From NCBI GenBank assembly GCA_025594325.1, contig JANHCV010000004.1, positions 1,550,001 through 1,614,000 of the forward strand: 64,000 bases of DNA, in the 5' to 3' direction. The notes under the pieces are model-generated. The model saw nothing but the letters and a program-made list of their open reading frames with translations, was not told the DNA's origin and made no database searches. Every line of letters begins with the position of its first letter. Position 1 is the stretch's first letter. The DNA is from Blastocladiella emersonii ATCC 22665. Lineage: Eukaryota > Fungi > Blastocladiomycota. The translations under genes and the position numbers were made by a program. Below are positions 1 through 23,574 of this stretch, one piece after another.

Positions 1-2537
1 TGCCGTACCTCTACACGTGCCGCGTCGGCGCCCACGCGTTCCCGCAGTGTCTCGTCGGCGTCCACCCGATCCTCGGCTCCGAGCGGGCCGGCGACGAGGA
101 GGACGACGAGCTGCTGCTCCTCGACGAGACCGAGCCCGCGTCTCCATCACCCACCGCCCCCGCCGCCGAGGCCGCCCGACCGTCCGATGCCGTCGCCGTG
201 TCCCCGCCACCATTACTCGCCAAGGCCCCACCACCGCCGGCCCCGCCGATTGTTCCCGACCTCGCCCTCGTCTCGGCCGACGGTACCCTGTCGACGGCGG
301 ACCCCGACGATACGCTGGGTCCCGCGGTCGGCGCCATCGTCGTCATCTCGGACCCGACGGGCGCGTCGTCATCCCAGTCGGCCGACCCCGCGTCGACCGC
401 GTCGCGCAACGGCAACGTCGTCAACAAGCGGCTCAAGATGCCGTTCGACATTGACGTCGAGGTCGAGGTGTCGCCGCAGACCGGGTTCGGGTTCGGCGTC
501 GCCGTCACGCTGCTCACCGGCGGACTCACGCTGTTCATCTACCGCAAGGTCCAGAACTACACGCAGTCGCGCCGGAGCAAGCAGCGCAAGCGTGCGGCCG
601 CTGCCGACGACGATGCCGCGGCGGCTCAGGCCACGCCCGCCCCGCCGTCGCTCTCGCAGACGCTCGCCATGTTCGCCCAGCAGCTCGTCATCCACTACCT
701 CACGCGCATGACGGGGCAGGGCGGGTTTTACGGTATGCGCTCGCCCACGTCGCCGACGGCGGCTGCCGCCGCGCCGTCGCCGTCCATGGATCCGCCGACG
801 TCGTCGTCGTGGTGGTCAGGGTCGTCGAGCTCGATCCCTGGCGGATTCAAGCGGCCGTCGACGCCGTCGGGTTCCGCAACTCCCGTAACGCCAGCAGCGA
901 CGCAGCCGAGCACGCCCGCCGCCGGTGGACCAACCCCCGCGCGTTCCGGGGGTGGAACCCCGCCGCTCGACCCGACGGCGCCGATCGTGCAGCCCGTGGT
1001 GCTGGCGGACGGGTCGACGCGGCTCGGCCGCCTGCTGCTGAGCGACCAGGTGCTCGGGTATGGGTCGCACGGGACGGTCGTGTACCGGGGCAGCTACGAC
1101 GGGCGCGACGTGGCGGTGAAGCGGCTGCTGCGCGACTTCTTTGACGTGGCGACGCACGAGGTGTCGCTGCTGGTCGAGAGCGACGACCACTACAACGTGG
1201 TCCGGTACTACTGCAAGGAGCAGTGCGACCGGTTCCTGTACATTGCCCTCGAGCTCTGCGACTGCTCGCTGGCCGACGTCGTCGAGGGGCTCGGGTCCGC
1301 CGAGGCCCACGAGGAGGTCCGCCGCGCGTGGAACCCTGCGCGCATCCTGTACCAGGTGCTCTCGGGCCTGCATCACCTCCACGCGCTCAAGATTGTGCAC
1401 CGCGATCTCAAGCGTATGTTCACCACTTGTCCTCTTGCGCGAATGCTAAGGCTCACTCGCTGTCGCGGTCGTGTAGCCCACAACATTCTCCTTGTTCGCA
1501 ACCGCCGCCAGACGTGGAACCCCGCGGGCGCGCGCGTCCTCATCTCCGACTTTGGCCTGTGCAAAAAACTCGAGGTCGACCAGTCGAGTTTCGGCAACAC
1601 GGCGACGCACAACGGCGGCACTGTGCGTATCTTCGCATTCGAGATCTGAACTCGAGCACTGACTCTCGCATATTGCGTGTAGTTTGGCTGGCGTGCGCCC
1701 GAGCTCCTGACGCACCCGACGGCGCCCACGACCTTCTCGTCGCACTCGTCCATCGACAAGTCGAACGCGAGTGCGAGCGGCACCCCGCCGCACTCGCCGT
1801 CAACGGCCACGCTGCCGCGGCGCCGGCTGACGCGCGCGCTCGACATCTTTTCGCTTGGGTGCCTGTTTTACTACGTGCTGACCGAGGGCGACCACCCGTT
1901 CGGCGACCGGTACACGCGCGAGATCAACATCCTGCGCGACCAGGGGACGCTGGCGGGGCTCGACCCGGCCGTGGTGCGCGACGCGCCGCTCGCACGAGAC
2001 ATGATCGGGGCCATGATCGCGCACGACCCCGCGGTGCGGCCGACTACGGGCCAGCTGCTCGTCCACCCGTACTTTTGGACGCCCGCGCGCCGGCTCAACT
2101 TCCTGGCCGACGTGTCGGACCGGTTCGAGACCGAGACCAAGGACCCGCCGAGCGCGCTGGTCCAGGTGCTCGAGCGCGGCGCCGAGAATGTCGTCGAGGG
2201 CGACTGGACGCAGCGCATCGACCGCAGCCTCGCGGGGAACCTCGGCAAGTACCGCAAGTACCGCGGCGAGTCGGTCGTCGACCTGCTGCGCGCCCTGCGC
2301 AACAAGAAGCACCACTACGGCGACCTCCCGCCCGGCGTCCGCCGCGCCCTCGGCCCGCTGCCCGACGGGTTCCTCGCCTACTTCACGTCCAGGTTCCCGA
2401 ACCTGTTCCTCCACGTCTACGGCGTCGTCCGCGACACGCCCGAGCTCAGGGCCGACTCGCTGTTCGCGGGGTACTTTGCGCCGTCCGCGGATCCCGCGGG
2501 CGGCGACCGGCCGGGTAACGGCGGGTTCTTTGGCTAG
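1..2537 (+). CDS. IRE1: IRE1 ER-stress sensor kinase/endoribonuclease, 5'-partial (exons 1-1413, 1477-1622, 1683-2537)
   Basis: TM helix (GFGFGVAVTLLTGGLTLFIY), then kinase motifs GYGSHGTVV, VAVKR, HRDLKPHNIL (rebuilt across intron 1414-1476), DFG and GGTFGWRAPE (across intron 1623-1682). The KEN RNase motif DLLRALRNKKHHY follows; stop TAG at 2535-2537. Confidence 0.96.
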
Positions 2538-5197: not shown

Positions 5198-6342
5198 ATG
5201 GAACGGTGCGTTGGGCATCGGGACAACGCGAGCTCGTGCCCAGCACCGTGCTGACGGGCGCCCGCTGCCGCGCCGCGCCGCGTAGCTACGAGAAGCAGGA
5301 GAAGCTCGGCGAGGGCACCTACGCGACCGTCTTCAAGGGCATCTCGCGCCTGACGGGCGACATTGTCGCGCTCAAGGAGATCTCGCTCGACCCCGAGGAG
5401 GTACTGGACCCCTGCGCGTTGCGGGACTGACGGAGCCCGACGCGGCGCTGACGCACCCCCCTGTGCACCGTGTAGGGCGCGCCGAGTACCGCCATCCGCG
5501 AGATCTCGCTCATGAAGGAGCTCCGCCACCCCAACATTGTGCGGCTGCACGACGTGATCCACACCGAGAACAAGCTGATGCTCGTGTTCGAGTACATGGA
5601 CCAGGACCTGAAGCGGTTCATGGACCGCCACGGCCGCCACGGCGCGCTCGAGCCCGCCCTCATCAAGTCGTTCATGTACCAGCTGATGCGCGGCATCGCC
5701 TTCTGCCACGAGAACCGCGTGCTGCACCGCGACCTCAAGCCGCAGAACCTGCTCATCAACTCGCGCGGCGAGCTCAAGCTCGCCGATTTCGGTCTCGCGC
5801 GCGCCTTTGGGATCCCCGTCAACACGTTTTCGAATGAGGTGGTCACACTGTGGTACCGCGCGCCCGACGTGCTGCTCGGGTCGCGCAACTACTCGACGTC
5901 CATCGACATGTGGTCGACCGGGTGCATCATGGCCGAGATGTTCACGGGCCGCCCGCTGTTCCCGGGCAAGACCAACGAGGACGAGCTCAACCGCATCTTC
6001 CGCATCATGGGCACGCCCAGCGAGCTGACGTGGCCGGGCATCTCGCAGTACACCGAGTACAAGTCCAACTGGCAGTACCACCCGGCCGCGCCCTTCACCA
6101 CGCTGTTCCCGATGATGGACATGTACGCCATCGACCTGCTGCAGCGCCTGCTCCAGTACCAGCCGCAGCTCCGCGTCTCGGCCAAGGACGCGCTCAACCA
6201 CGCCTACTTCTCGGACATCCACAACATCTACAGCCAGGCCCAGCAGGCACAGAACAACGCCGCCGCCGCCGCCATGGCCGCGTCACACCAGCAGCAGCAG
6301 CAACACCACGCCATGCAGGGCCAGGTTAGCCAGTTCCAGTGA
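5198..6342 (+). CDS. PHO85: Pho85/CDK5-type cyclin-dependent kinase, 329 aa, with Ala/Gln-rich tail (exons 5198-5205, 5286-5400, 5476-6342)
   Basis: [62 protein letters not shown]; two canonical introns. Confidence 0.93.
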
Positions 6343-9040: not shown

Positions 9041-11761
9041 ATGGTCGCCGCCACGCTCGGCTCACCTACTGCAATGCATCCGCCGTCGCCGGCCTCGCTG
9101 CCTCCCAGGCACCCGCGCACCTGCGCTACCGCCTCTCCCGCCGCGCTCGAACCGGTGGCCCAGTCTCCCGCCGCGTCCCCGCCCATGTCGGCGACGCCAT
9201 CCCGTGGCCCAAGGACGGCCGCGAGGACGAGATCAGTCACCATCACGGCCGACCCGGCACGCGACGCTGCCCCGGCCTCGGCCACGTCGCCGCTGCCGCC
9301 GGTCCCCGAACCGCGGCGCGGCCGCACCATGACCCGGCGGTCGTTGCGCCGGCCGCGGCCCGCCGAGTCAGCCGCGCTCGGTGAAATCGAGGACGCGCTC
9401 GCTGCACGTTCCACGTGGCTCCCGCAGGACCCGGCCGCCGATGCGGCTGCGTCCCCGACCGTGGTCGCCAGCACCAGCAGCAAGTCGCCCGACACGGAGC
9501 GGGAGGCGGGCCGGCGCACCTCGGCGGCGGTCGACGAGAACGCCGTCGGGCTCTCGCTCTCGGCGTACCTCTCGTTGCGTGATGCCGGCCTGCTCGGGGT
9601 CGCAGCCGCCTCGCAGCCCAACTCGGCCCACGCGCTTCACGCCGCAGTTGCGGCGTTGCCGCCAGCCGAGCTCGCGGCGGCCGCCGCGCCTGGACTCGGA
9701 CCTGCCCGCATGGCGAGTGTGCATCGGCGCCGATCGCGTTCCCGCACCGCAACCGGCAACGACCTGCAGCCGCTCATTGTGCCTCCGCCATTGCCTCCAT
9801 TGCCGGATGGCGCAGCAGCAGCAACAGCGCCCGGTTCGGCTGCGCGAGGTGGGCCGCCGTCCCCGTCGTCGGCCGTCGACAGCGGCGTCGCAATCGTATC
9901 CCCGACGCTGCCCTCGCCATCACGGCCGCTCGATACCCCGCTGCTCAGCCCGACCCGCGACGGCCAGTTCTTTCCCGTCCCGCGCATCCGCCGCGCCAAG
10001 AGCCGCAAGGCCTCGGTCGTCCGCACCCTCACCCTCGGGACCCCGCCCGGCTGCGAAATCGAGAGCCCCATGCCCGGCGGCGACTTTGGCGGCGTGCTCC
10101 CGCTGGGCGCCTTCGCGACGGGCGACGCCATTGCCGCGGGGCTCGCGCAGCCGCCACCACCCGTCCACGTCAGCCTCCTGCGGCGGCGGCTCACCGAGCT
10201 CGACTTTGCCCTCGTGTGCCCGACCCCGAGCCCGCGCGCGTTTGCCGCGCTGCAGACGCTCGACCTGTCGCGCAACAAGCTGACCAAGCTGCCCGCGGCG
10301 CTGGCCGAGCTGACGCAGCTGCGGTCGCTCAACCTCGCGTGCAACCAGCTGACGACGGTCCCGCGCGTTGTGACGGCGTTCGAGTACCTCGAGACGCTGA
10401 TCCTGTCGCAGAACCGCATCGACTCGCCGATCCCGTCGTCGCTCGGCTACCTGACGCAGCTGCGCGTGCTCAAGCTCGACGCCAACAGCTTCTGCGGGCC
10501 CGTGCCGCTCGCCCTGGCGTCGCTCGCGCGCCTGCGCACGCTCGCGCTCGGCAGCAGCACGTACGGCGGCAACCGCATCACGGCAATCCCGCCCGGCGTC
10601 CTCGGCGCCATGCCCGAGCTCGTCGAGCTTGACCTCGCCAACAACGAGCTCATGGCGCTCCCCGACGACACGTTCACGTCGCCGCACCTCCGCACGCTCA
10701 CCGTCGAGGGCAACCGCCTCGATACATTACCCGAGACGATCGCCGACGCGCCGCACCTCGTCACGGTCCTCGCCGCCAACAACCTCTTCTGCCGCCTCCC
10801 CACCGCGCTCCCGCGCTGCCCGCGGCTCCAGGTCCTCGACCTCAGCGGCAACGCACTCTGTTTCGTGCCCATGGAGCTCATCCAGGCCGTCCACCGCCGA
10901 CGCGTCACGGTCCTGCTCACGGGCAACCCGTTCACGCGGTTTCAGGAGGAGGCGGCCGCGCTCGCTGCGGCCACGGCGGCTGTTGGGCTCGCGGGACCCG
11001 TCCAGGACGGTCCGAGCGATGATGGCGACGACGAGGCCCCGCTGACGGACCAGAGCACGAGCGCCGGCAGCGACGACGGCGCCGACGACGATCCGCTGCC
11101 CCCGCCCCCGCGCGCCTTCGAGTTCTCGCCGCGCGAGCTCGGATACCTGCACCCGGAGGCGGTCGCGTTCGACGTCCAGACCAACGCGTACCTCGGGTTC
11201 CCCGCCGACGCGCCCGCGTGCTGGTGGCCGCCCGCCGACGGGCAGACGCAGCCGTCGCAGTCGCCAACGCCGCCGTCCAGCTCGGGCAGCCCGTCCCCCG
11301 CGCGACACACGTCGCCCGACTCGGCCGGTGCGGCGCACCCGGCGCGCGTCCTGACGCTGCGCGAGCTCGCGGCGCGCAAGTACGTCGAGACGCACCTCTC
11401 CTCGCGCGACTCGTCCGGGTACCACCACCACCACCCGCAGGTCGAGGACTACGTGCCCGAGCGCCTCGCGGCGCTGCTGCGCGCGGCGCACGACCCGTGC
11501 CCGCGGTGCGCCAGCCCTGTGGTCGGCGAGTACCTGGCCACGGTCGAGCTCGAGCGCGCGCTCGGCCACACCCTGGTGCCCGTGCACAAGCGGTACTGCT
11601 CGGCGCACTGCCTCCTCCAGGCGCCCGCCGTCGCGGAGCGGCCCGCTGCGAGTAGCGGGTTGCCGCGGTCGGCGTCGGTCGCGGCGCTCGCTGGCGAGGC
11701 GGCGTCCGCGGCGCAGATTCGGCGGCAGGGGTCGGCCGCCGGGTATCACTGTCTGTGGTAA
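9041..11761 (+). CDS. Intronless 906-aa leucine-rich repeat protein with C-terminal BC-box-like and Cys4 motifs (LRRC58/LRRC28/LRRC69-like)
   Basis: About 9 typical LRRs (LxxLDLSxNxLxxLP) at ~10250-10930, with a disordered Pro/Ser N-terminus. The C-terminus has TLRELAAR, VPERLAALL, CPRC and YCSAHC. The true start may be a downstream ATG. Confidence 0.85.
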   Translation: MVAATLGSPTAMHPPSPASLPPRHPRTCATASPAALEPVAQSPAASPPMSATPSRGPRTAARTRSVTITADPARDAAPASATSPLPPVPEPRRGRTMTRRSLRRPRPAESAALGEIEDALAARSTWLPQDPAADAAASPTVVASTSSKSPDTEREAGRRTSAAVDENAVGLSLSAYLSLRDAGLLGVAAASQPNSAHALHAAVAALPPAELAAAAAPGLGPARMASVHRRRSRSRTATGNDLQPLIVPPPLPPLPDGAAAATAPGSAARGGPPSPSSAVDSGVAIVSPTLPSPSRPLDTPLLSPTRDGQFFPVPRIRRAKSRKASVVRTLTLGTPPGCEIESPMPGGDFGGVLPLGAFATGDAIAAGLAQPPPPVHVSLLRRRLTELDFALVCPTPSPRAFAALQTLDLSRNKLTKLPAALAELTQLRSLNLACNQLTTVPRVVTAFEYLETLILSQNRIDSPIPSSLGYLTQLRVLKLDANSFCGPVPLALASLARLRTLALGSSTYGGNRITAIPPGVLGAMPELVELDLANNELMALPDDTFTSPHLRTLTVEGNRLDTLPETIADAPHLVTVLAANNLFCRLPTALPRCPRLQVLDLSGNALCFVPMELIQAVHRRRVTVLLTGNPFTRFQEEAAALAAATAAVGLAGPVQDGPSDDGDDEAPLTDQSTSAGSDDGADDDPLPPPPRAFEFSPRELGYLHPEAVAFDVQTNAYLGFPADAPACWWPPADGQTQPSQSPTPPSSSGSPSPARHTSPDSAGAAHPARVLTLRELAARKYVETHLSSRDSSGYHHHHPQVEDYVPERLAALLRAAHDPCPRCASPVVGEYLATVELERALGHTLVPVHKRYCSAHCLLQAPAVAERPAASSGLPRSASVAALAGEAASAAQIRRQGSAAGYHCLW

Positions 11762-12076: not shown

Positions 12077-12695
12077 ATGACCGTGACCGAGGACGCTGTA
12101 CGTGCGGCACCATGCCCGTGCGCGCGGGCTGGATGAAGCCGGGCACCGTGCATGCGCTGACGGCCGGCCCGTGGGATCGCGCACACGTGTGTGTAGCAGG
12201 CGGCAGTGATTGCCAACCGGTTCACGACGGCGACCATGGAGGAGCGCAAGGCGGAGCTATCGCGGTTCGTGGTCATCAAGGCGGCGCGCGTGCGCGAGCT
12301 CGAGGAGGAGCTGATGGCGCGCCGGGGTACGGACTCACCCTCACTCATTGGCGATGTGGTGCGAGGTGGAGAACTCACGAATGTGACGCCCGCGCGTGTG
12401 TGTAGACGAGCTGGCGCTCCTCGAGGAGCAGCTGGCCGAGATCGAGCGCGCCGAGGCGACCGAGCAGTGGCTCACGAGCGAGGATGCCGCGAGCCTGGCG
12501 TCCCTGTTGCTGGCCGAGGCCGCCGAGGCCGCCGCCGTGTCCCCCGCGGCCGAGGACGGCGCGGCGGCCGGCGACGAGGAGGACGACGACTACGTCCCGC
12601 CCGTGTTCCCCGAGAAGGTGATCGCCGAGATCCGCGCCGAGCACCGCGCCGCGCGCGAGGCCCGCGAGGCGCACCTCCACGAGCCGCGTTCTTGA
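12077..12695 (+). CDS. Small acidic coiled-coil protein, ~145 aa, unknown function (exons 12077-12097, 12200-12326, 12406-12695)
   Basis: ATG in CATCATG context and two GTAC..GTGTAG introns give one open frame (EELMARRDELALLEEQLAEIE). The first acceptor is a tandem TAGCAG. Confidence 0.7.
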
Positions 12696-13457
12696 GCGAG
12701 CGTCGTTCGGGTTGTCCGTCCGGTCGCATCGACGCGACGCGACGACGGCAGCACGCGTCAGTTTTTGTGTCTCTTCCCTCCCCCTCCAGTCTTGATGTGT
12801 CCCCCTCAGCCTGCATGTATCTATCGTCTCCCTGACATTGCGCATCCTGCCAGCAAGCCCATCACGGCGCCATGCATCGGCAGCGACGAAGAGCCCGGAA
12901 CGGCGCTTCGGAGAACGCGAAGGTCGAAGCGAACGCGTTTTCCTCGCCGCCCGCCGACCGACCCAGCTCGCCGTTTTCGCCGGCGGAAAACCGTGGCCAC
13001 ATGCCCGCCGGCTCGCCCGCAGCAGCGTGGTCGAGCAAAGGTTTAAGACAGTGGGAGAGCCCCGATTGCGGTTGCTTCTCCCCTCCCTCCCTCCGGCCTC
13101 GCGTTTGTTCCTCGCCGCGACCGACCATCGCCGACCGCGGCGACTAGAGAGCAGCAGCGCGACGACCTTCCCGCCCGGGCACACCCACGCCGGCCTCCTT
13201 CGCCACCCATCATCCGCCCCCGGTCCGGCCCCGGCCCGCACCCTAGACGCGGGCGAGCCACGCACCCTCTCCCTCCCCTCGCGCTTCGCGACTACCCGCA
13301 ACCGATACCTGCGACCTCGACGACGTGTCTCCACGGCTCGCGTCGCCACCACCCTCGTCAACAAGGTGCGAGCGAGCGAGCAGCGGTGATCGCCGCACGC
13401 GTTGGTCTTGCAGCCGAGTCGAGCTGACCGTTTTCACTCCTCCTCGTCCAGTGTACC

Positions 13458-14368
13458 ATGACGGCCACGCTGCAGTTCCAGGGCAGCGCCGCCGCCGACA
13501 ACAACGGCACCGCTGCCGGCCGCATGGCCATCTCGATCGACACGACGGGCGACTCGTCGGCCTCGTCGTCATCGTCGTCGTCCGACTCGTCCGTCACGGC
13601 CCACCATGCCGCTGCCGCCACGACCACCACCGCCACGACCGCCGCCTCGGCCTCCGCTGCGCCCGCCGGCAAGAAGCCTGAGCCGCCGCGCAAGGCCGTC
13701 GTGGCCACGGTCGGCACGACGCAGTCGGGCAAGTCGCAGCTGCTCGCCTTCATGCACGACTACTGCGAGCAGCCGCACGACCAGGCCGACCTCGCCATCG
13801 GCGACGGCGTCAACTCGTGCACCAAGCTCGCCAAGCGCTACTCGCTCACGGTCCCGCGCCGCGAGGTCCGCCTCGTCCCCAAGGCCACGGCCCGCGGCGC
13901 CGGCCGCTTCTCGAGCCGTATCACGGCCACGGCCGCGTCGTCGTCCTCGTCGTCCGCGCACCACCATCAGCAGCAGCAGCACCAGCAGTCGTCGTCCTCG
14001 GCGAGCTACCAGACCTCGTCGTCGGCCTCGTTCGGTGGCAGCGCTGGCTCGACGGCTGGCCATGGCGGCGCCGCCGCGTACCAGGTCTCGGGCACCGCGA
14101 CTTACGGCGCTGTCGCTGGTCACGGCCACGGCCACGGCCACGGCCAGGCGGGCGGTATGGTGACGGCAACGTCGTCGTCGACCACAGTGTCGGCCACCCA
14201 CGACGGCCCGTCGTACTCGGGATCGGCGTCCGCCGTCCACCAGTCGCACTCGCAGCAGCAGCAGGCCCACCATCAGCAGCAGCAGCAGCAGCAGCAGCAG
14301 GCCCACCACCACCACCACCAATACCAGCAGCAGCTCACCCAGCAGTTGCACCACCAGGCCCAGCACGC

Positions 14369-14404
<36 letters not shown>

Positions 14405-17400
14405 CCAGTACCACCAGAACCAGCACACGCAGCAGCAGACCCACCAGAACCAGTCCAACTGGCCGTCGTACCCGCCCACCTCCTCGGCCACCTCGACCGT
14501 CCAGGGCAACACCACCTCGTACCAGGGCAACAACGCCAACACTAGCCAGCAGCAGCAGTACGGCGGCGCCGACGCCTCGTATCAGGGGAACGCGTCGTAC
14601 CAGGGCAACGCCAGCCAGCAGCAGCAGCAGTCGTACCAGGGCAACGACTCGAACACGAGCCAGCAGCAGCAGTACGGCGGCGGCAACGCCTCGTACCAGG
14701 GCAACGGCGGTAACGCCTCGTACCAGGGCAACGACGGCAACGCCTCGTACCAGGGCGGCAACGACGCCGGCGCGAGCCAGCAGCAGCAGTCGTGCCAGGG
14801 CTCCAACACGAGCCAGCAGTACCCGGGCTACGACACGAACCAGCAGTCGGCGCGCGGTCTCGGGCCCAACTCGGGCATCGTGCGCCCCGAGAGCGCCGCC
14901 GCGACCCGCTCGCTGCACGTCAACACGGCCGCCGCCGACCTGAACCGCCCCGCCTCGGCCCCGCAGCCGCACGGCGCCACGGCTGCCTCAGTCGCGGCGA
15001 CCGCCGCCGCTGCTGCTGCCTCCAAGGCCGCGGCCGCGTCCATGGCGCTCGCCGCCGAGGCGTTCGCGCTCAGCGCCGACGACGACTTTGACCTGACGCC
15101 GTCGACCGACTCGCCCGACAGCCCGCCCGCCGACACGCGCCCGGGTACCGCCACCGCCGTGTCGCGCGGGATCCCCATGTTGTCCACGTCCATGTCCATC
15201 TCCAACGACGCGTCCATGGTCATCACCGACGGCTCCAGCTCCGGCTCGGGCCACGGGTCGCCCGAGCTCACGTCGCTGCACACGTCGGCGTCCGCGAGTC
15301 CGATTCGTGGTGCCGGTGCGGCGACCAACATTGCGGCCCGCGGCGGCACCGCGTTCGTCGCCGACGGCATGCCCGACAGCTACGCGTCGTTCACGTCCGA
15401 AGACACCATGACGTCGAGCAGTGTGCGGTCGTCGTCGGCGGGCGGCGCCGACCCGTTCGCGCGCCCGTCGCCCATGATCTCGCCGCACACCCCCGCCGAC
15501 CCGCACATGAACCCGACCGTGTTCGGCACCTCGTCCACCGAGTCGGCCGCCGATGAGGGCACGCGCCGCGCCATCCGCGACGCGCTCGTCGCCGCGGGCA
15601 TCTCGACGCACGTCACGGGCAGCGGCGGCGGCGAGACCGCCACGTCGCGCGGCATGGGCGCTCCCGACTCGGGCGTAGGCGCCTCGCGCTCGCTCGGTGC
15701 GCCGGCCGCGCGTAGCGGCCCGCAGGACACCACCGTCACGTCGCAGTACGCGCCGCCCGCGCCCGGCCAGTGCGACACCACCGTCACGAGCCAGGTCCCG
15801 CCCGAGGCTGCCGTCATGGCCACGTACCCGCACAGCAGCGGCTCCGAGACGATCCAGATGCCGCAGCCGCAGCCGCCGACCATCGCCATGCCGCAGCCCC
15901 AGCCGCCCGTGGCCGTCCACCACGCGGGTGCCTGCGCCACCGCCGACTCGACCGCGGTGACGAACCAGCAGCAGCAGCAGGGCACCAACTACGACCAGCA
16001 GTACATAGCCGGCCAGGTCGCGCTCCAGAACCAGGTCGTGCAGGCGCAGGCCCAGTACCACGCCCAATACCAGCAGCAGCAACAGCAGCAGCAGCTCGCC
16101 CAGATCCAGCAGCTCGCCCAGATGTCGCAGCAGCAGAACCAGCAGATCCAGCAGTCGCAGCAGCACCAGCAGGTCCAGCAGCACCAGCACACGACGACGA
16201 CGACCACCCACCATACCCAGCAGACCCACAACGTGCAGGTCCACCACCACCACCACTCGCACAGCACCTCGTCGTCGTCGTCCTCGTCGCAGCACCACCA
16301 GCAATCCCAGTGCCAGCAGGTCCAGCTCACGTCCGAGCAGCAGCAGGTCCAGCAGTACTACCAGCAGCTCGCGGCCCAGAACCTGCACCAGGCGGCCGAG
16401 AAGCACCAGTGCCAGGACCACTTCTACGACAAGTACCACGGCCACATGCAGCTCCAGGCCCACGCCGAGCAGCAGCTGCAGCTCCACGCCGCCATCGCCA
16501 ACAAGCACCAGTGCGAGGAGCACTTTGCCCTCGAGTTCACCAAGTTCGAGGACGAGAAGAACGCCGCCGCCGCCGCGGCCGCCGCGACGACGACGACGAC
16601 CACCACCACCACCAAGACGGGCCGCCGCCAGCGCCTCAAGAACCGCTTCAAGAACACGGCCGGCCACCTGTTCGGCAAGGTGTTCAACCACTCGGACTCG
16701 GACTCGGACTCGTCGTCATCCGACAGCGACTCGGACTCGGACACGGAGCACGCCGCCAACCTCACGGTCCAGTACAACAGCGGCAACGAGCAGAACGCGG
16801 CGTCGTTCAGTCTCGGCGGCTCATTCGCGTTTGGCGCCGCCGCCGCCGGCGCGGCTACGGCTGCTGCCGCGACCTCGAACACGACCTCGGGCCAGTCGAC
16901 GGCGATCCACGGCGACGTCCAGGTGTTCCAGGGCACCGACTACCAGTCGCACCAGCAGGCGATCCAGCAGCAGCAGCAGTCGGAGGCCGACCTCGCGCAG
17001 CACCTGCTCGGCGCCCAGATCGCCCACGAGTCGCAGATCATGGCGTCGCAGCAGGTCGGCAACGACACCAACCAGCAGCAGCAGAACCAGACCCAGTCGG
17101 GCTTCGGTATGCAGGTCCAGTACGGCGACGCCAAGCAGCAGCAGCAGGCCGGGTTCGGCGCGCAGGTGCAGTTCGGCCAGACCGAGCAGACGCAGCAGAC
17201 GCAGCACACTCAGCAGACTCAGCAGCAGCAGCACCAGGGCACCGCCGTCGGCGTCCACGTCCAGGGCCAGAACAACCCTTCTGGCGTCCAGGTCAACCAC
17301 ACGCACCAGAACCAGGCGCACCATGCTCAGCACCAGCAGCAGCATCACCATCACTCGCAGACCCACCACCATTACCACCACACTCAGCAGCAGCAGCAGC

Positions 17401-19142
17401 AGCACCATCACCTGCAGAGCGCGACGGGCGGGTTCGTCGCGCCGATCCACCCGAACCACAGCCTGTTCCTCGCGAGCGACGTGGACGGCTGCTCGCTGAC
17501 GACGCTGCTCAGCCGCCTCGAGGAGCAGTTCAGCATCACGACCACGACGACGTCGGCCAACTTCACCGAGACGGTCGTCATGAACGAGGAGCAGCGCATC
17601 GAGTACCTCGAGGAGGTCGAGGACCTGTTGCACGACCGCACGCTCGAGCTCAAGGTGACGCGCCCCGCGCTCGGCACCCCGCCGCGCATGTACCTCGACA
17701 TGATCGACACGCCCGGCCTGCTCGACAGCGACTCGTTCCGCGACCCGTTCGTCGACCTCGACCACCTCACGTCGATCCTCACCCAGGTCAAGCGCGCGGG
17801 CCACGTCACGGCCATCGTCTACGTCATCAAGTACGTTTTCTACTCGCTTGCTCGCGTGTGCGAATTACGAAAACTGACCCCGTCCGCGTACCCCCGCGTA
17901 GCGTCGATCGCCCGTACGACTCGAGCGCGCTCATGGCCCTGTCGACGTACCTGACCAACCTGCGCGAGCTGTGCACCAACCTGATCGTCGTGCACTCGTC
18001 GTACAACGTGCACAAGGCGCTCGAGGTGGCCAAGTCGTGCAAGGAGCAGTCCGGGTTCTGCCTGTTTGACCTCGGCGCGCGCGTCCGCGAGTTCAACGCG
18101 CGGCTCGGCGAGCTCGGGTTCCCCGACGTGCGCCCGCTCCACGTCGCCATGGACAACCTCGTGCAGCCCACGGCGCGCGCTGGGCTCAAGGCCATCTGCT
18201 ACGAGGGCGCGCACGTCCTGCTCGACATTGTCGAGGAGCTCGCCAAGGCGCCCGTCGTGCCCATTGAGCGCGTCAACTTTGTCAAGCTGCGCATGATCCG
18301 CGACGTCGACGTGGTACGCTGACTCGGGGCGCCGCACTCGATTTCCGTTAACGATGCTGACCTCAACTGTTTGTTCGCTCGCGTAGCACGTTTCGGTGCA
18401 GCTCACCAACTCGATCGACATGCTGCGCACCGAGCTGTACTCGCTCGGCAACAGCGACCGCGAGTCGCAGCTCGTCACGGCGGCCGAGGCGCTCGCCGAG
18501 ACCCGCGCCGAGCACCGGCGCGTGCTGTCGGAGCTCGCGCGCCTCGACACGGACGACGAGGTCGAGGTGGACCTGCGCAAGTGCCGGCGCATCCCGCAGG
18601 CGTCGGTGCGCGAGGGCCGGTCCGTGATGCTGGTCGTGATCGCGTACGAGTCGACGGAGGTCCCGCTGCGCGCGGCACGCCTCGTGCAGCCGCACTGGCC
18701 GCGCGGCATCGTGCGCCACGAGCACCTCGACACCAAGCGGTATATTGCCGTCCTCGCCACGCTCCCGCAGTGGCCGTGCTGCGCGCACGTGCAGCTGTTC
18801 ACGCACCGCCGCGACGTGCACGCGGCCGAGATCCGCCGACTCCAGGTGCAGCGCGGCACGCTCGAGGGCCAGCTCACGGAGCGCCAGGAGGAGCTCGCCA
18901 AGTGGACGCGCGCCCTCGGCGAGGAGAAGCGCCGCGTCGCCGAGCTCGAGGCCCGACTCACTATCCTCAAGCGCGCCGTGGCCACGGTCGACGCCGACCG
19001 CGTCCCGCTCGACCTGTTCGTCGACGTCCACGACTTGTACCGCGACCTCGCCCAGGACATCCACCTGCGTCGCAAGGTCGACGTCGCCAAGGTCCGCGCC
19101 CTCGCGCATCTCGTCGAGCGCTACTACTACCGCCGCTGCTGA
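13458..19142 (+). CDS. Giant (1846 aa) P-loop TRAFAC-type GTPase with ~1200-aa Q/H/S/N-rich insert inside the G-domain and C-terminal coiled coil (exons 13458-17830, 17902-18313, 18387-19142)
   Basis: G1 VGTTQSGKS (aa 86-93), G2 IGDGVNSCT (T122), G3 MIDTPG (D1417), then the VTAIVYVIN strand and LIVVHS in the G4 position. The 4.3-kb first exon is uninterrupted. A probable 5'UTR intron lies at 13366-13451. Confidence 0.85.
14248..14402 (+). repeat. Coding CAG/CAC trinucleotide tracts (polyQ/polyH); further tracts at ~16070-16340 and ~17190-17410
   Basis: Runs of (CAG)n and (CAC)n are read directly from the sequence, in frame with the giant GTPase. Confidence 0.95.
14500..14840 (+). repeat. Imperfect coding tandem repeat SYQG(N), 7 copies plus one SCQG, with NTSQQQQYGG spacers
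   Basis: The nucleotide unit TCGTACCAGGGCAAC recurs; translation reads SYQGNNANTSQQQQYGGADASYQGNASYQGNASQQQQQSYQGN... Confidence 0.9.
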
Positions 19143-19297
19143 GGAGCGGGCGACGCGTCGCGAGGCCCGCGATGCGCATGATGAGGATGGTGTTCTTTCG
19201 TGATTGCTTTCGATATTTTGTGCGTATAAACATTGTATTTGTATCATCAAGTCGATTCGAGAGGCGGGTCGGAGGGCGCTCAGCGAACGGAGCCCGT

Positions 19298-21921
19298 TCA
19301 ATCATCATCCTCGTCAACGTAGGTCACGGCCACGTTCTCCGGCTCCCGCGGAGCCGCGTTCGGCTGCTTCACGTCCGCGATGAACTGGTCCGTGATAGCG
19401 TTACCGGCGAGGTCGAGCGTCTCGAGGCGCGGGCAGGTGTCCGGGATGGCGCGGAACAGCACCCTCGCACCGACGTCCGACAGCCCGCACCGACCCAATG
19501 ACAGGTTGCGCAGCGAGCGCGGTCCGTCGAAGTTGACCATGCCCGCGTCGCCAAACGGGATCTCGCCGGTCCGCAGCGTGTGGAGCTCGGCAGCGATCCG
19601 GGCGAGCGTCGTGAGCGAGGCGCTGGTCAGCTGCGCGTTGCCGCACAGGCGCAGCTTCTTGAGCGAGCGGGGCAGTTTGGGCACGAGCGCGGCGAGACCT
19701 GCGTCCGTGAGCCGGTTCTTGCGCAGGCTGAGGTCCTTGAGGTTGGGCGGCAGCTTGGCCGCGAGCACCTCGATGTCCGCGTCGGCGAGGTTGTTGTGCG
19801 ACAGGGACAGCTCCTCGAGGCCGGCCGGCAGGTTGGCGACGAGCGCGGCGAACGCGCCCGGGAGGAAGTCGACGCCGTGGATCGTGAGGTCCTGGAGGCC
19901 CTGCGGCAGGCGCGCGGCGATGGCCGTGGCCGCGGCCACGTCGATGGTCAGGTTGGTGTTGTTCTCGACGACGAACATGGCGAGCTTCGGGGTCAGGCAG
20001 TCAGCAAGCTGGCCGAACATGGCCGTGTCGAGACGGACGCTGTCGAAGATCAGCGTGTTCACGCGCTGCCGGGCCGACGTCAGCGCACGGGCGAGGATGC
20101 GGATGCCAGCCGGCGTCAGGATCTTGCTCCGAAGCGTCAGCGAGTCCGACCGGCCGCCGGTGAGGTTCAGGCGACGCTCCCAGATCGTCTTGTCGCCTGT
20201 GCTGGTCGGCGCCTCGAAGCCCGCGAAGAAGACGTCCTACTCCACGACGCAGCGAATGGCGATCCGTCAGCAACGGCTTAGATTCTCGGTTTAGCGCATC
20301 GTACCTGCTCAGAGGGAGCCGGCTGAGGCTGAGGCTGTGCCTGACTGTTAGGCTGCGCGGCCGGTTGAGACTGCTGCGCGGCGGGCGCAGCGGCCGTGGC
20401 TGGAGGCACAGCGGCAGGCACAGCGGTGACGGGCACGGCGGCGGGCGTCGGTCTCGCAGCGGTCACGCTGGCCTCGTAGAGAACCTTGAGCTGGAGCATG
20501 ACGTTGGCCATGGTCGGGCGGCTGGGCGCGTCCGGGGACCAGCACCGCTCGATGATCGTCCAGAGCGAGCCGAGGTACGTGGCCGAGTCTTTGGGGCACG
20601 TCGGGCGCTCGCGGCTGAGCAGCTTCTGCTGGATGACGGTGGCCGAGTCGCCCACGAACGGCGGGGTCCCGCCCATGATCTCGAAGGCGAGCATCCCGAA
20701 CGCGAACACGTCCGCCGCAGGCGTCGCTGCCACGGGGCTGTCACCGAACAGCTCGGGCGCCGTGTACGCGGGCTCGCGCGGGTGGACCGAGAGCGCGCGC
20801 TCGATTGACGTCGGGAAGATGACGGCGTTGCCGTGGCCGTCCATGAGCACCTGCGGCGGGCAGAGGTTGCCGTGCACGACGCTGCTCGCGTGGAGGTGCG
20901 CGAGCCCCTGCGCGACCTGGTAGAGCAGGCGGAGGTGCGCGTCGGGATGGAGCCGGGCGTAGTCGACGAGAGCCTCGGTGAGCGCGTCGCGGAACACGAG
21001 GAACGGCGGCGACGCGAGCGGAGCGAGGCCGAACACGCACGCGAGGTGCGGGTGGGAGACCTTGACCCAGGCCTCGGCGTGTTGCACGGCGGCGACGAGT
21101 TCGTTGAGCGACGGCTTCGCGCGAGCGTGCAGGGACTTGACAGCCACGGACAGGTCGAGATCGAGGCGCGTCGCGGTGGTCCACGCGCCAGCGTTGCGCG
21201 GGCCCGGCTCAGTGAAGAGGTAGCCGAACGTTGTCACGAGCGGCACGGTGTGCGCCTCGGCCAGGACGGACGTCGTGAGTTTGGCCTCGCTATCGAAGGC
21301 GGCCTTGCCCTGCGACAGGTAGCGGGTGGCCGCCGATGCGCAGGAGCGGGTCACGTCGTCGGCGTGCGGGGAGGCCTTAGCGCGGGCGTCGAGGGCGATC
21401 AGGGCCTCGGCCGGCCGGCCGGTCTTGTTGATGCGGAACTTGACCATGGACTGCGTGTGCGTCTCGTACTCGGCCATCTCCTTCATGATGCGCAGCATGT
21501 CGCGGCGCGTGGCGTTCTCGAGCTGCTCGGCGATCTTGTCGAGCGACACCTTGACGCCGGCATCCTTGAGGTCGTTGCCGATGGCAACCACGACGTTGGC
21601 TGCGTTGAGCAGGGAGGTCAGGTGGTTACCGAAGTTGAGGATCTGGTCCACCTCGTTGGCGTCGGGCATCTGCTGCTGCGAGACGCGGGCCGAGTCGACG
21701 GCCGCTCGCAGGGCATGGACGCCGCGGTCGATGAGCTGGACGTGGTTGAGCGGGGCCGGCATCGGCGTGGAAGCTACGGCGTCTTTGAACTTGAGCGAGT
21801 GGGTGGCGATGAAGCGACGGAGCTCCCAGGTCTTGCTCTTCGGCAGCTTCTCGATGCTCTCGCCGAGCTCGGCGAGTGCGGAGAGCGAGAGCGTCGCGCT
21901 CGGTGGACCGGCGGACGGCAT
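19298..21921 (-). CDS. 851-aa protein: N-terminal helical domain + TKL-like pseudokinase + Pro/Ala/Gln linker + ~10 RI-type LRRs (exons 21921-20305, 20236-19298)
   Basis: A 68-nt intron (20304-20237, GTACGA..CTGAC..GAGTAG) joins the kinase-like ORF and the LRR ORF in frame. Motifs VAVK, HPH, HGNLCPPQVL, YTAPE, DVFAFG and RCW..RP are present, DFG is absent, and the LRRs have a ~26-aa period (LxxLxLxxNxLxDxxxxxL). Confidence 0.85.
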
Positions 21922-22001
21922 GGTTGATGCGTTCTTCAAGTGTGTGATACGTTGCTCCAGTCCTGAGGGGGGAGTTGCAGTTCAGCGAGCAGGAGCTCCA
22001 A

Positions 22002-22007
22002 TTTATA
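22002..22007 (-). promoter_or_regulatory. Putative TATA box (TATAAA) of the pseudokinase-LRR gene
   Basis: TATAAA on the minus strand ~80 nt upstream of the ATG in a locally AT-rich promoter. Similar TATAAA/CATAAA elements precede MEP (33552-33557, minus), Hva1 copy 2 (~23163), PHO85 (~5089) and HNT2 (~39867). Confidence 0.5.
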
Positions 22008-22424
22008 CCTTCTCCGTGATCGTGGTTTATTGCCCAGCTCACTTTCACCGCCTTGAGGGTAGACAGATGGACAAATCATGGACAGAGTACAGCCCTTGTC
22101 TCGGTCCGCATTGGAAAGGATCAACCGGGAGAAGGCTCAGAACAACGGAGAACAACGGGCCGCGCAAGGTGCGTGCGAGCGGTAACGCGTGAGACGCGAG
22201 ACATGCGAGACGCGTTGCGATATCACGTGTGGCGCGCTGATCCGACCAACGCGGCGCGAGTCACCCGCCCGCGGCTGCGCACGGCGCCGCCCGCCTTCGC
22301 CCTCACCCCCTCGGACCCCCGCACCGACTTGGCCGCCATCGCAGCCTCCCCGCTCGACCAAGCAAGGCCCCACGCCGCTACGCGTTACCACGTAACTGCA
22401 CCAAGAACCACCACCACCACCACC

Positions 22425-22841
22425 ATGTCATCGACCCGCCGCGGCCACGCGCACGAGGACGTGCCCGAGGAGCACGTTGCCGTCGACGAGCTCGACCTGG
22501 GCGGCGTGCTCAAGCTGCACCCGGGCGACCGCGTCGTGTACCACGTCATCGGCGGCGGCAGCGAGAAGACGCCGACCGCGACGGGCACGGTCGAGGAGAT
22601 CCTGATCGCCGACTTCGACATGGGCCACGGCCGCCACGCGCACGCGAGCGAGCGCGACCCGCGCCTCGTCATCCGCAACGACCACACCCAGAAGACCACG
22701 CCGTACAAGGCCGAAGCCATTGTCGGGCTCGCCGACGACGCGACGGGCGAGGCGTCGGCCACGGGCGAGGTCGAGATCGTCGAGGACTCGGCCGGCGCCG
22801 ACGACGACGCCGAGTACGTCGACGACGAGCTCGTGTCGTGA
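22425..22841 (+). CDS. Hva1-type Tudor/SH3-fold (DUF2945-like) small protein, copy 1, 138 aa with acidic tail
   Basis: GDRVVYHVIGG..TGTVEEI..ASERDPRLVIRNDHTQKTTPYKAEAI matches the fungal Hva1_TUDOR pattern as I recall it. ATG is in (ACC)n context and the gene is intronless. Confidence 0.75.
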   Translation: MSSTRRGHAHEDVPEEHVAVDELDLGGVLKLHPGDRVVYHVIGGGSEKTPTATGTVEEILIADFDMGHGRHAHASERDPRLVIRNDHTQKTTPYKAEAIVGLADDATGEASATGEVEIVEDSAGADDDAEYVDDELVS

Positions 22842-23259: not shown

Positions 23260-23574
23260 ATGTCTTCGACCCGCCGCCACTCGCACGAGGACGTCCCCGA
23301 GGAGCACCACCCGATCGACGAGCTCGACTGCGACTCGTACAAGCTGCACGCCGGCGACCGCGTCAAGTACCACCCGATCGGCGGCGCCGACTCGACCGAC
23401 ACGCCGACGACCACGGGCACGGTCCAGGAGATCCTCGTGGAGCCCTTCGACATTGGGCACGGCCGCCACGCGCACGCGAGCAAGAACGACCCGCGCGTCG
23501 TCATCAAGTGCGACAACACGGGGAAGACCACCGCCTACAAGCCCGGCAACATCATCGGCCTCGCCGACGACTAA
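23260..23574 (+). CDS. Hva1-type Tudor small protein, copy 2, 104 aa (tandem paralog)
   Basis: Colinear with copy 1 (MSSTRRHSHEDVPEEH..GDRVKYHPIGG..GHGRHAHASKNDPRVVIKCDNTGKTTAYK). Confidence 0.8.
   Translation: MSSTRRHSHEDVPEEHHPIDELDCDSYKLHAGDRVKYHPIGGADSTDTPTTTGTVQEILVEPFDIGHGRHAHASKNDPRVVIKCDNTGKTTAYKPGNIIGLADD

Follow-up and report, generated by a model that had tools for sequence, protein, structure and literature searches.

Gene structure and locus

A 64,000-nucleotide stretch of contig JANHCV010000004.1 (assembly GCA_025594325.1) from Blastocladiella emersonii ATCC 22665, a water-mould-like fungus, is called the window here, and all coordinates are counted along it unless otherwise stated. 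On its minus strand lies a gene for a protein of 851 amino acids (aa), in which a predicted helical N-terminal region is followed by a kinase fold that has lost its catalytic residues, a low-complexity linker and C-terminal leucine-rich repeats (LRRs) of the ribonuclease inhibitor (RI) type. The coding sequence (CDS) occupies exactly 19298-21921, with the ATG at 21921-21919 and the stop codon at 19300-19298, and is drawn from two minus-strand open reading frames (ORFs) in different frames, one of 553 aa (20278-21939) and the other of 254 aa (19298-20062). The joined exons give a translation which matches the NCBI hypothetical protein H9P43_004303 (P0001) at 100%. The original prediction had proposed a single spliced ORF at this place, and its coordinates proved to be those of the CDS and its translation that of the annotated protein. 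The gene model consists of the following elements.

20305..21921, minus strand: exon 1 (aa 1-539), carrying the N-terminal helical region, the pseudokinase and most of the Ala/Pro/Gln-rich linker; read from the ORF and its ATG, with the spliced translation equal to P0001
20237..20304, minus strand: intron of 68 nt with GT..AG borders and a CTGAC branch-like site; read from sequence signals, the NCBI model being identical
19298..20236, minus strand: exon 2 (aa 540-851 and the stop codon), carrying the remainder of the linker, the LRRs and a tail that is acidic; Pfam LRR_4, LRR_6, LRR_1 and LRR_8
20219..20463, minus strand, with the intron inside the span: Ala/Pro/Gln-rich low-complexity linker, aa 487-545 (Ala 30%, Pro 22%, Gln 15%; GC content at third codon positions, GC3, 0.71)

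The splice between the two exons rests on sequence signals, and at this level one gene with two exons and one continuous chain is confirmed. It is very improbable that pseudokinase and LRRs belong to two adjacent genes or transcripts which have been misjoined by a predicted intron. Such an artefact would agree with a junction supported by sequence signals rather than by transcripts, and with a linker whose low complexity and reduced GC3 lie directly ahead of the intron. However, without splicing the frame of exon 1 runs into a stop at 20280-20278, just 42 nt ahead of the point where the LRR frame opens, and there is no space for a promoter between the parts. The LRR frame begins directly after the acceptor TAG and offers no start codon ahead of the third repeat, and the intron, besides its canonical borders and branch-like site, has a clearly lower GC content (0.56) than the CDS has at its third codon positions (0.91), GC in the flanks being 0.58-0.60.

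The region lies in DNA of 65-70% GC (68% for the genome). Because of this GC richness, long open frames are common in the region, and between 18000 and 23500 long stop-free ORFs were found in several frames of both strands, including one of 364 aa antisense to the gene (20833-21927, plus strand) and one of 850 aa elsewhere. Open frames are thus cheap here, and therefore the length of an ORF alone is no evidence of coding or of selection. The frame of the gene is intact over 851 codons, with no frameshift and no stop and with a canonical intron, and GC3 is 0.91 over the whole CDS, reaching 0.92 in the N-terminal region, 0.94 in the kinase part and 0.92 in the LRR part. In addition, Logan contigs built from three sets of DNA reads of the source sample (one per run) showed zero differences and zero indels relative to the locus, so the unusual kinase motifs described below are not assembly errors.

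Pseudokinase domain

The central part of the protein was matched by the Pfam families PK_Tyr_Ser-Thr (PF07714; E=2.7e-22 at aa 254-477) and Pkinase (PF00069; 1e-13). The states of its motifs were read from HMMER alignments to EGFR and AMPK and from an alignment made in MAFFT against the domains of eight active kinases.

20464..21225, minus strand: protein-kinase fold with catalytic residues lost, aa 233-486; Pfam PF07714 and PF00069, PDB alignments and MAFFT alignment
21136..21147, minus strand: VAVK, with the beta3 Lys retained; aligned to VAIK of EGFR and to VAVK/VALK of the active kinases
20851..20874, minus strand: catalytic loop with HGNLCPPQ instead of HRDLKPxN (HGN at 20866-20874, CPPQ at 20851-20862), in which the catalytic Asp is replaced by Asn, the Lys by Cys and the metal-binding Asn by Gln; both alignments
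20806..20820, minus strand: IFPTS at the DFG position, with Asp replaced by Pro, Phe by Thr and Gly by Ser; both alignments

Moreover, the glycine-rich loop (G-loop) is degenerate, with GPRNAG in place of GxGxxG, and the activation segment is short, with about 14 aa between PTS and TAPE in the alignment. The Glu of helix alphaC is retained (in HAEAW), as are APE in the form TAPE, DxWxxG in the form DVFAFG and the CW...RP motif with the Arg of subdomain XI. If a pseudokinase is taken to be a eukaryotic protein kinase fold lacking one or more of three residues (beta3 Lys, catalytic Asp and DFG Asp), both Asp residues are missing here. Judged by these alignments, the domain is a pseudokinase, which has lost its catalytic base along with the two metal ligands but retains its structural core, the Lys-Glu pair and the scaffold of the C-lobe. 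A fold in this state could only be usable as a conformational switch or a docking module, and it might possibly bind nucleotide in a metal-free manner. All four motif readings of the original prediction (VAVK at 21147-21136, HGN at 20874-20866, CPPQ for KxxN and IFPTS for DFG) were reproduced in both alignments, the first two at the positions given.

The same motifs had been likened to the degeneration of MLKL, which is composed of a helical bundle and a pseudokinase and keeps VAIK while HRD and DFG are lost. In MLKL the G-loop, HRD and DFG motifs are non-canonical and the beta3 Lys serves metal-free ATP binding (PMC4718504), so the likeness holds in kind, since here too the beta3 Lys is kept while HRD, DFG and the G-loop are lost. 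In human MLKL the HRD-equivalent reads HGK, and its third residue is Asn in the mouse protein (PMC4718504). The Asn at the third position of HGN (20866-20874, minus strand) is shared with the mouse protein, which may be coincidence or convergence, the two domains not being close otherwise. Among the best 60 of the 1213 PDB matches, the nearest solved kinases by sequence were EGFR, AMPK, Roco4, ITK, TAK1, LRRK1 and MLK1.

Leucine-rich repeats and cellular location

About ten LRRs follow the pseudokinase, as had been noted originally, and they are closest to those of ribonuclease inhibitor and of animal NLRs.

19361..20182, minus strand: about ten LRRs of 24-29 aa, RI/cysteine-containing type (LxxLxLxxN/CxLxDxGxxxLxxxLP), aa ~558-831; repeat parse by eye, Pfam, PDB sequences and Foldseek

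Pfam matches to this part were led by LRR_4 (3.8e-16) and LRR_6 (7.7e-13). The best solved sequence was ribonuclease inhibitor (1.5e-14), followed by NOD2 (8e-7), FBXL17, NLRP5 (1.6e-4) and NLRP3. The LRR horseshoe is also the sole confidently modelled part of the full-length AlphaFold2 model, and it was the one part of that model for which Foldseek gave matches, namely NLRP14, SKP2, RI, FBXL2 and NLRP3. The label "RI-type" is therewith the correct one, although the repeats of 26 aa shade towards the cysteine-containing type of F-box proteins. RI-type LRRs are the sensor domains of animal NLRs, and a horseshoe of this type would here provide a surface for the binding of a protein or another ligand.

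The protein is predicted to be cytosolic because it has neither a transmembrane segment nor a signal peptide; its highest 19-residue Kyte-Doolittle mean is 1.6, and this peak falls within the kinase fold.

N-terminal region and proposed mechanism

The N-terminal region, which had been described as about 230 aa of helical appearance, is indeed predicted to be helical throughout in low-confidence AlphaFold2 models.

21226..21921, minus strand: orphan domain, predicted all-helical, aa 1-232, a candidate MLKL_N-like bundle with brace; low-confidence AlphaFold2 secondary structure and hydropathy

In these models, helices were placed at approximately aa 13-24, 28-50, 60-83, 88-120, 127-156, 169-183 and 189-223, of which the last two immediately precede the kinase fold. 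This layout is compatible with a four-helix bundle followed by two brace helices and is not diagnostic of it. The first of the predicted helices (aa 13-24) is acidic and shows no marked hydrophobicity.

The gene encodes one cytosolic, non-catalytic chain, in which a predicted helical head and a pseudokinase are joined by a flexible Ala/Pro/Gln linker to C-terminal RI-type LRRs. The order of output, switch and repeat sensor would copy the logic of NLRs, with the pseudokinase standing in for NACHT/NB-ARC. The LRRs might sense a ligand or a partner, and until this is bound to them, the pseudokinase and the LRRs might keep the N-terminal bundle inactive. Once released, the bundle, which would be a diverged member of the MLKL_N/HeLo/RPW8 class with a brace, might oligomerise and act on a membrane. 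We hold this sensor-switch-executioner mechanism as a whole tentatively and as somewhat doubtful. As for its parts, it is marginally favoured that the N-terminus has a diverged bundle fold of the MLKL/HeLo/RPW8 class, an output in the form of an MLKL-like membrane-active bundle is slightly doubtful, and any role in immunity or cell death is purely what we infer. The broader proposal, that Blastocladiella has one-chain intracellular receptors devoid of NACHT in which an RI-type LRR sensor and a pseudokinase switch govern a membrane-killing bundle of the MLKL/HeLo class, is rather unlikely.

The only positive pointer to a bundle fold is similarity in language-model features, which is below threshold and serves as a lead. 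With aa 10-165 as the query, the best named clusters of the ESM Atlas were all MCAfunc, MLKL_N, RPW8, DUF7792 and PUB10_N (0.84-0.75), which are four-helix-bundle families and mostly plant MLKL_N, RPW8 and MCAfunc; with aa 1-245 the score was 0.75. With the whole protein, generic LRR and TKL-kinase clusters came first (0.94-0.90), and further down the top 20 came a basidiomycete cluster of kinase with MLKL_N and one of vertebrate MLKL, which scored 0.90 on 199 shared features.

Several results weigh against an MLKL-type executioner. In the calibration given by the ESM Atlas itself, a third of shuffled proteins reach scores below 0.9, and such scores are a lead only. The N-terminal region had no Pfam match at E<=10, including none to MLKL_N, Helo_like_N, SesA, Goodbye or RPW8, and no match among PDB sequences, NCBIfam or PADLOC at permissive E-values; likewise, the precomputed Pfam matches for H9P43_004303 show no faint MLKL_N. 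An exhaustive phmmer search with aa 1-245 against 1.84 billion representatives found no homolog at E<1e-3. The only non-self match, P0056, was set aside as spurious, being a protein of nine tandem repeats in which one 25-aa stretch was matched repeatedly. AlphaFold2 run without an alignment gave mean confidence scores (pLDDT) of 43 for the full length and 39 (38.7) for aa 1-232, which are unusable, and Foldseek with the low-confidence model of aa 1-232 returned nothing below E=1; the models do agree on helices in this region. As well, MLKL is not among the best 60 of the 1213 PDB matches to the kinase domain, which by overall sequence is not specifically MLKL-like. Finally, no ortholog or paralog came out of word-indexed searches with three queries (exon 1, the complete protein and the kinase region alone), which returned the protein itself and otherwise generic kinases and LRR proteins, mostly of bacteria or oomycetes and with identities of 22-42%.

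The same results bear on a non-lethal alternative, which is a real if somewhat improbable possibility. The protein might be an adaptor of LRRs and pseudokinase which uses its LRRs to bind partners and exerts allosteric control over an active kinase or some other enzyme, in the manner of STRAD, the BIR2/BSK-type proteins and the pseudokinases of tandem kinases. Its helical N-terminus would then serve only oligomerisation, localisation or regulation, with no permeabilising of membranes. This would fit the generic LRR and TKL-kinase clusters at the head of the whole-protein ESM Atlas neighbours, the ordinary TK/TKL and bacterial-type kinases that are nearest in sequence, the failure of the MLKL_N, HeLo and RPW8 profiles to match, and the acidic character of the predicted helix at aa 13-24; moreover, most pseudokinases work as scaffolds or allosteric regulators (PMC4718504). 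On the other hand, the order of head, switch and C-terminal LRRs is that of NLRs, whereas LRR-kinases of the LRRK and receptor-like types have their LRRs before the kinase. In addition, the N-terminus consistently has four-helix-bundle families of cell death or immunity as its language-model neighbours, and MLKL clusters do occur among the neighbours of the whole protein.

Returning to the executor-switch-sensor reading of the original prediction, its domain order, pseudokinase and RI-type LRRs have held, while the N-terminus is only a candidate for a bundle of the MLKL type, no family having been matched to it, so that the reading taken together falls a little short of an even chance. The absence of NACHT/NB-ARC beside the pseudokinase was borne out by a Pfam scan of the whole protein, in which kinase and LRR families only were found. 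What the locus contributes is an architecture and a clear pseudokinase state, and it is not proof of a killing module.

Relatives and neighbouring genes

Given that several catalytic motifs have been lost together and that the activation segment is shortened, the gene might also be a decaying or relaxed paralog, i.e., a lineage-specific copy from an expanded helical-bundle/kinase/LRR family which has lost kinase activity and is drifting, maybe with no maintained function. No ortholog or paralog was detected for any domain, generic similarity amounting to ~27-35% only, and the intact frame is weak evidence at 68% GC, as the 364-aa antisense ORF (20833-21927) exemplifies. Drift of this kind, though not negligible, is unlikely: the 851 codons contain no frameshift or stop and the intron is canonical, GC3 is high in all three domains (0.92, 0.94 and 0.92), and the structural residues of the kinase are retained (the Lys-Glu pair, APE, DxWxxG and the Arg of subdomain XI). 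The LRRs follow a regular consensus as well, still reaching 1.5e-14 against ribonuclease inhibitor.

Among the proteins retrieved, P0072, P0073 and P0074 were rejected as relatives, their high scores being owed to the several kinase domains that each contains. The matches of the whole protein to MAD6, PD-T4-6 and PglW in PADLOC/NCBIfam were likewise attributed to generic kinase similarity and lay far under the curated cut-offs. A tblastn search of the window for paralogs found none. Weak tblastn similarity to the kinase domain was seen at 5488-5973 (plus strand, E=2e-6) and 1341-1409 (plus strand, 4e-4), which points to a second kinase-like gene, unrelated to the first, close to where the window begins.

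The genes around the pseudokinase-LRR gene are as follows.

22425-22838 and 23260-23571, plus strand: tandem pair of Hva1_TUDOR (PF11160) paralogs, a short way past the pseudokinase-LRR gene on its 5' side (4.3e-10 and 3e-15, respectively)
~12077-19142, plus strand (12780-19845, minus strand, in L001): called gene of 1996 aa, convergent with the 3' end of the pseudokinase-LRR gene; no Pfam match on record
~9298-11761, plus strand (20161-22624, minus strand, in L001): further LRR gene, called at 895 aa and running off the locus, about 10 kb away; LRR_4 and LRR_14

The last 248 aa of the 1996-aa product gave weak matches of coiled-coil type (Cut12 and the CENP-F leucine zipper, E ~0.007). Two unrelated LRR genes, at 19298-21921 and at ~9298-11761, thus lie near each other. 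The idea of a defence island found no support, since the neighbours (the two Hva1_TUDOR genes, the 1996-aa gene and the LRR gene) include no recognised immune gene.

Significance and comparison with known systems

In fungal-immunity reviews, MLKL-related bundles are treated as outputs of NLRs or of amyloid signalling, and fungal NLR-type receptors are stated to use WD40, ANK or TPR repeats, never LRRs. We class the Blastocladiella protein with the fungal fusions of MLKL/HELL and kinase, here with a C-terminal RI-type LRR domain and with the MLKL bundle as a candidate. A protein composed of bundle, pseudokinase and LRRs was not found described in the literature searched on MLKL with Blastocladiomycota, Chytridiomycota, early-diverging fungi, LRR and pseudokinase. 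The original prediction had taken the architecture to be unfamiliar from fungi, which stands for the form with an LRR tail and has to be narrowed otherwise, because HELL-kinase fusions (PMC12881547) and MLKL-Sel1 fusions (PMC8778642) have been published.

If the proposed mechanism were true, LRR-based cytosolic sensing would occur in fungi after all, and execution of the MLKL type would be wired straight to a repeat sensor, with neither a RIPK-like activator nor a STAND NTPase in between. A single fungal chain that unites a pseudokinase and NLR-like LRRs with a candidate bundle of the MLKL type would represent a third route to a sensor-switch-executioner, and might be informative on how necroptosis-like modules were assembled before the divergence of animals and fungi. 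The reading is attractive and can easily be tested.

Vertebrate MLKL, the executioner of necroptosis, is built of a four-helix bundle, a brace and a pseudokinase, and the Blastocladiella protein resembles it in having a helical N-terminus directly before the pseudokinase, in the retained beta3 Lys with degenerate G-loop, HRD and DFG motifs, and in the third-position Asn which HGN shares with the mouse protein (PMC4718504). In contrast, the Blastocladiella N-terminus has no detectable sequence similarity to that of MLKL, its kinase is no closer to MLKL than to EGFR, AMPK, Roco4 or TAK1, an RI-type LRR domain of about 300 aa follows the pseudokinase, and no activator of the RIPK3 type is known here. 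Membership of the MLKL family is unproven because the kinase does not group with MLKL and the bundle is not established.

The cytosolic LRR-TKL kinases (ROCO/LRRK, oomycete and bacterial) likewise combine LRRs and a TK/TKL-like fold in one soluble chain, and Roco4 and LRRK1 were among the PDB matches. However, in these families the LRRs come before a kinase that is active, and ROCO proteins contain Roc GTPase and COR domains between the two, whereas the Blastocladiella protein has a dead kinase with the LRRs on its C-terminal side, and Pfam gave no Roc or COR match. Plant LRR receptor-like kinases, which have a signal peptide, extracellular LRRs and a transmembrane helix ahead of the kinase, differ as well, since the present protein lacks a signal peptide, a transmembrane segment and any N-terminal hydrophobic segment, and its LRRs follow the kinase.

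Within fungi, HeLo/HELL domains are homologous to the bundle of MLKL, and some of these domains are fused to kinase or pseudokinase domains; fungal NLR-type receptors have been reported to be devoid of LRRs (PMC12881547). Hundreds of MLKL-like N-termini have been found in basidiomycetes (PMC9815663). The Blastocladiella protein would share with the HeLo/HELL proteins and BaMLKL a fungal MLKL-related bundle fused to a kinase or pseudokinase (PMC12881547, PMC9815663), its own bundle being a candidate, but the described proteins come from Dikarya and carry no LRRs, while the present one has no match to Helo_like_N, SesA, Goodbye or MLKL_N. In Glomeromycotina, MLKL-family proteins with C-terminal Sel1 repeats have been reported (homologs of TCDB 1.A.105), and in that study MLKL homologs were reported only there (PMC8778642). 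An early-diverging fungus and C-terminal solenoid repeats are common to both cases, with the Blastocladiella N-terminus only a candidate for the MLKL type, whereas the repeats are Sel1 there and RI-type LRRs here, and the phylum is another one.

The plant MLKLs (AtMLKL1-3 and wheat Pm13) consist of a HeLo-type bundle, a pseudokinase and a C-terminal extension and have a role in immunity (10.1101/681015, PMC10951266). Their order of bundle, pseudokinase and C-terminal extension would be matched by the Blastocladiella protein, whose N-terminus is a candidate bundle, and plant clusters dominate the ESM Atlas neighbours of its N-terminus; however, the plant extension is not an LRR domain, and no sequence-level homology has been shown. 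In comparison with animal and plant NLRs (NOD2, NLRP3/5/14 and CC-NLRs), the centre of the protein is a protein-kinase fold and the NTPase is absent from the Pfam scan of the whole chain; the lack of NACHT and NB-ARC puts the protein outside the NLR family. What it does share with NLRs is the order of a presumed N-terminal output, a presumed central switch and C-terminal LRRs, together with repeats which match those of RI, NOD2 and the NLRP proteins of animals in both sequence and fold.

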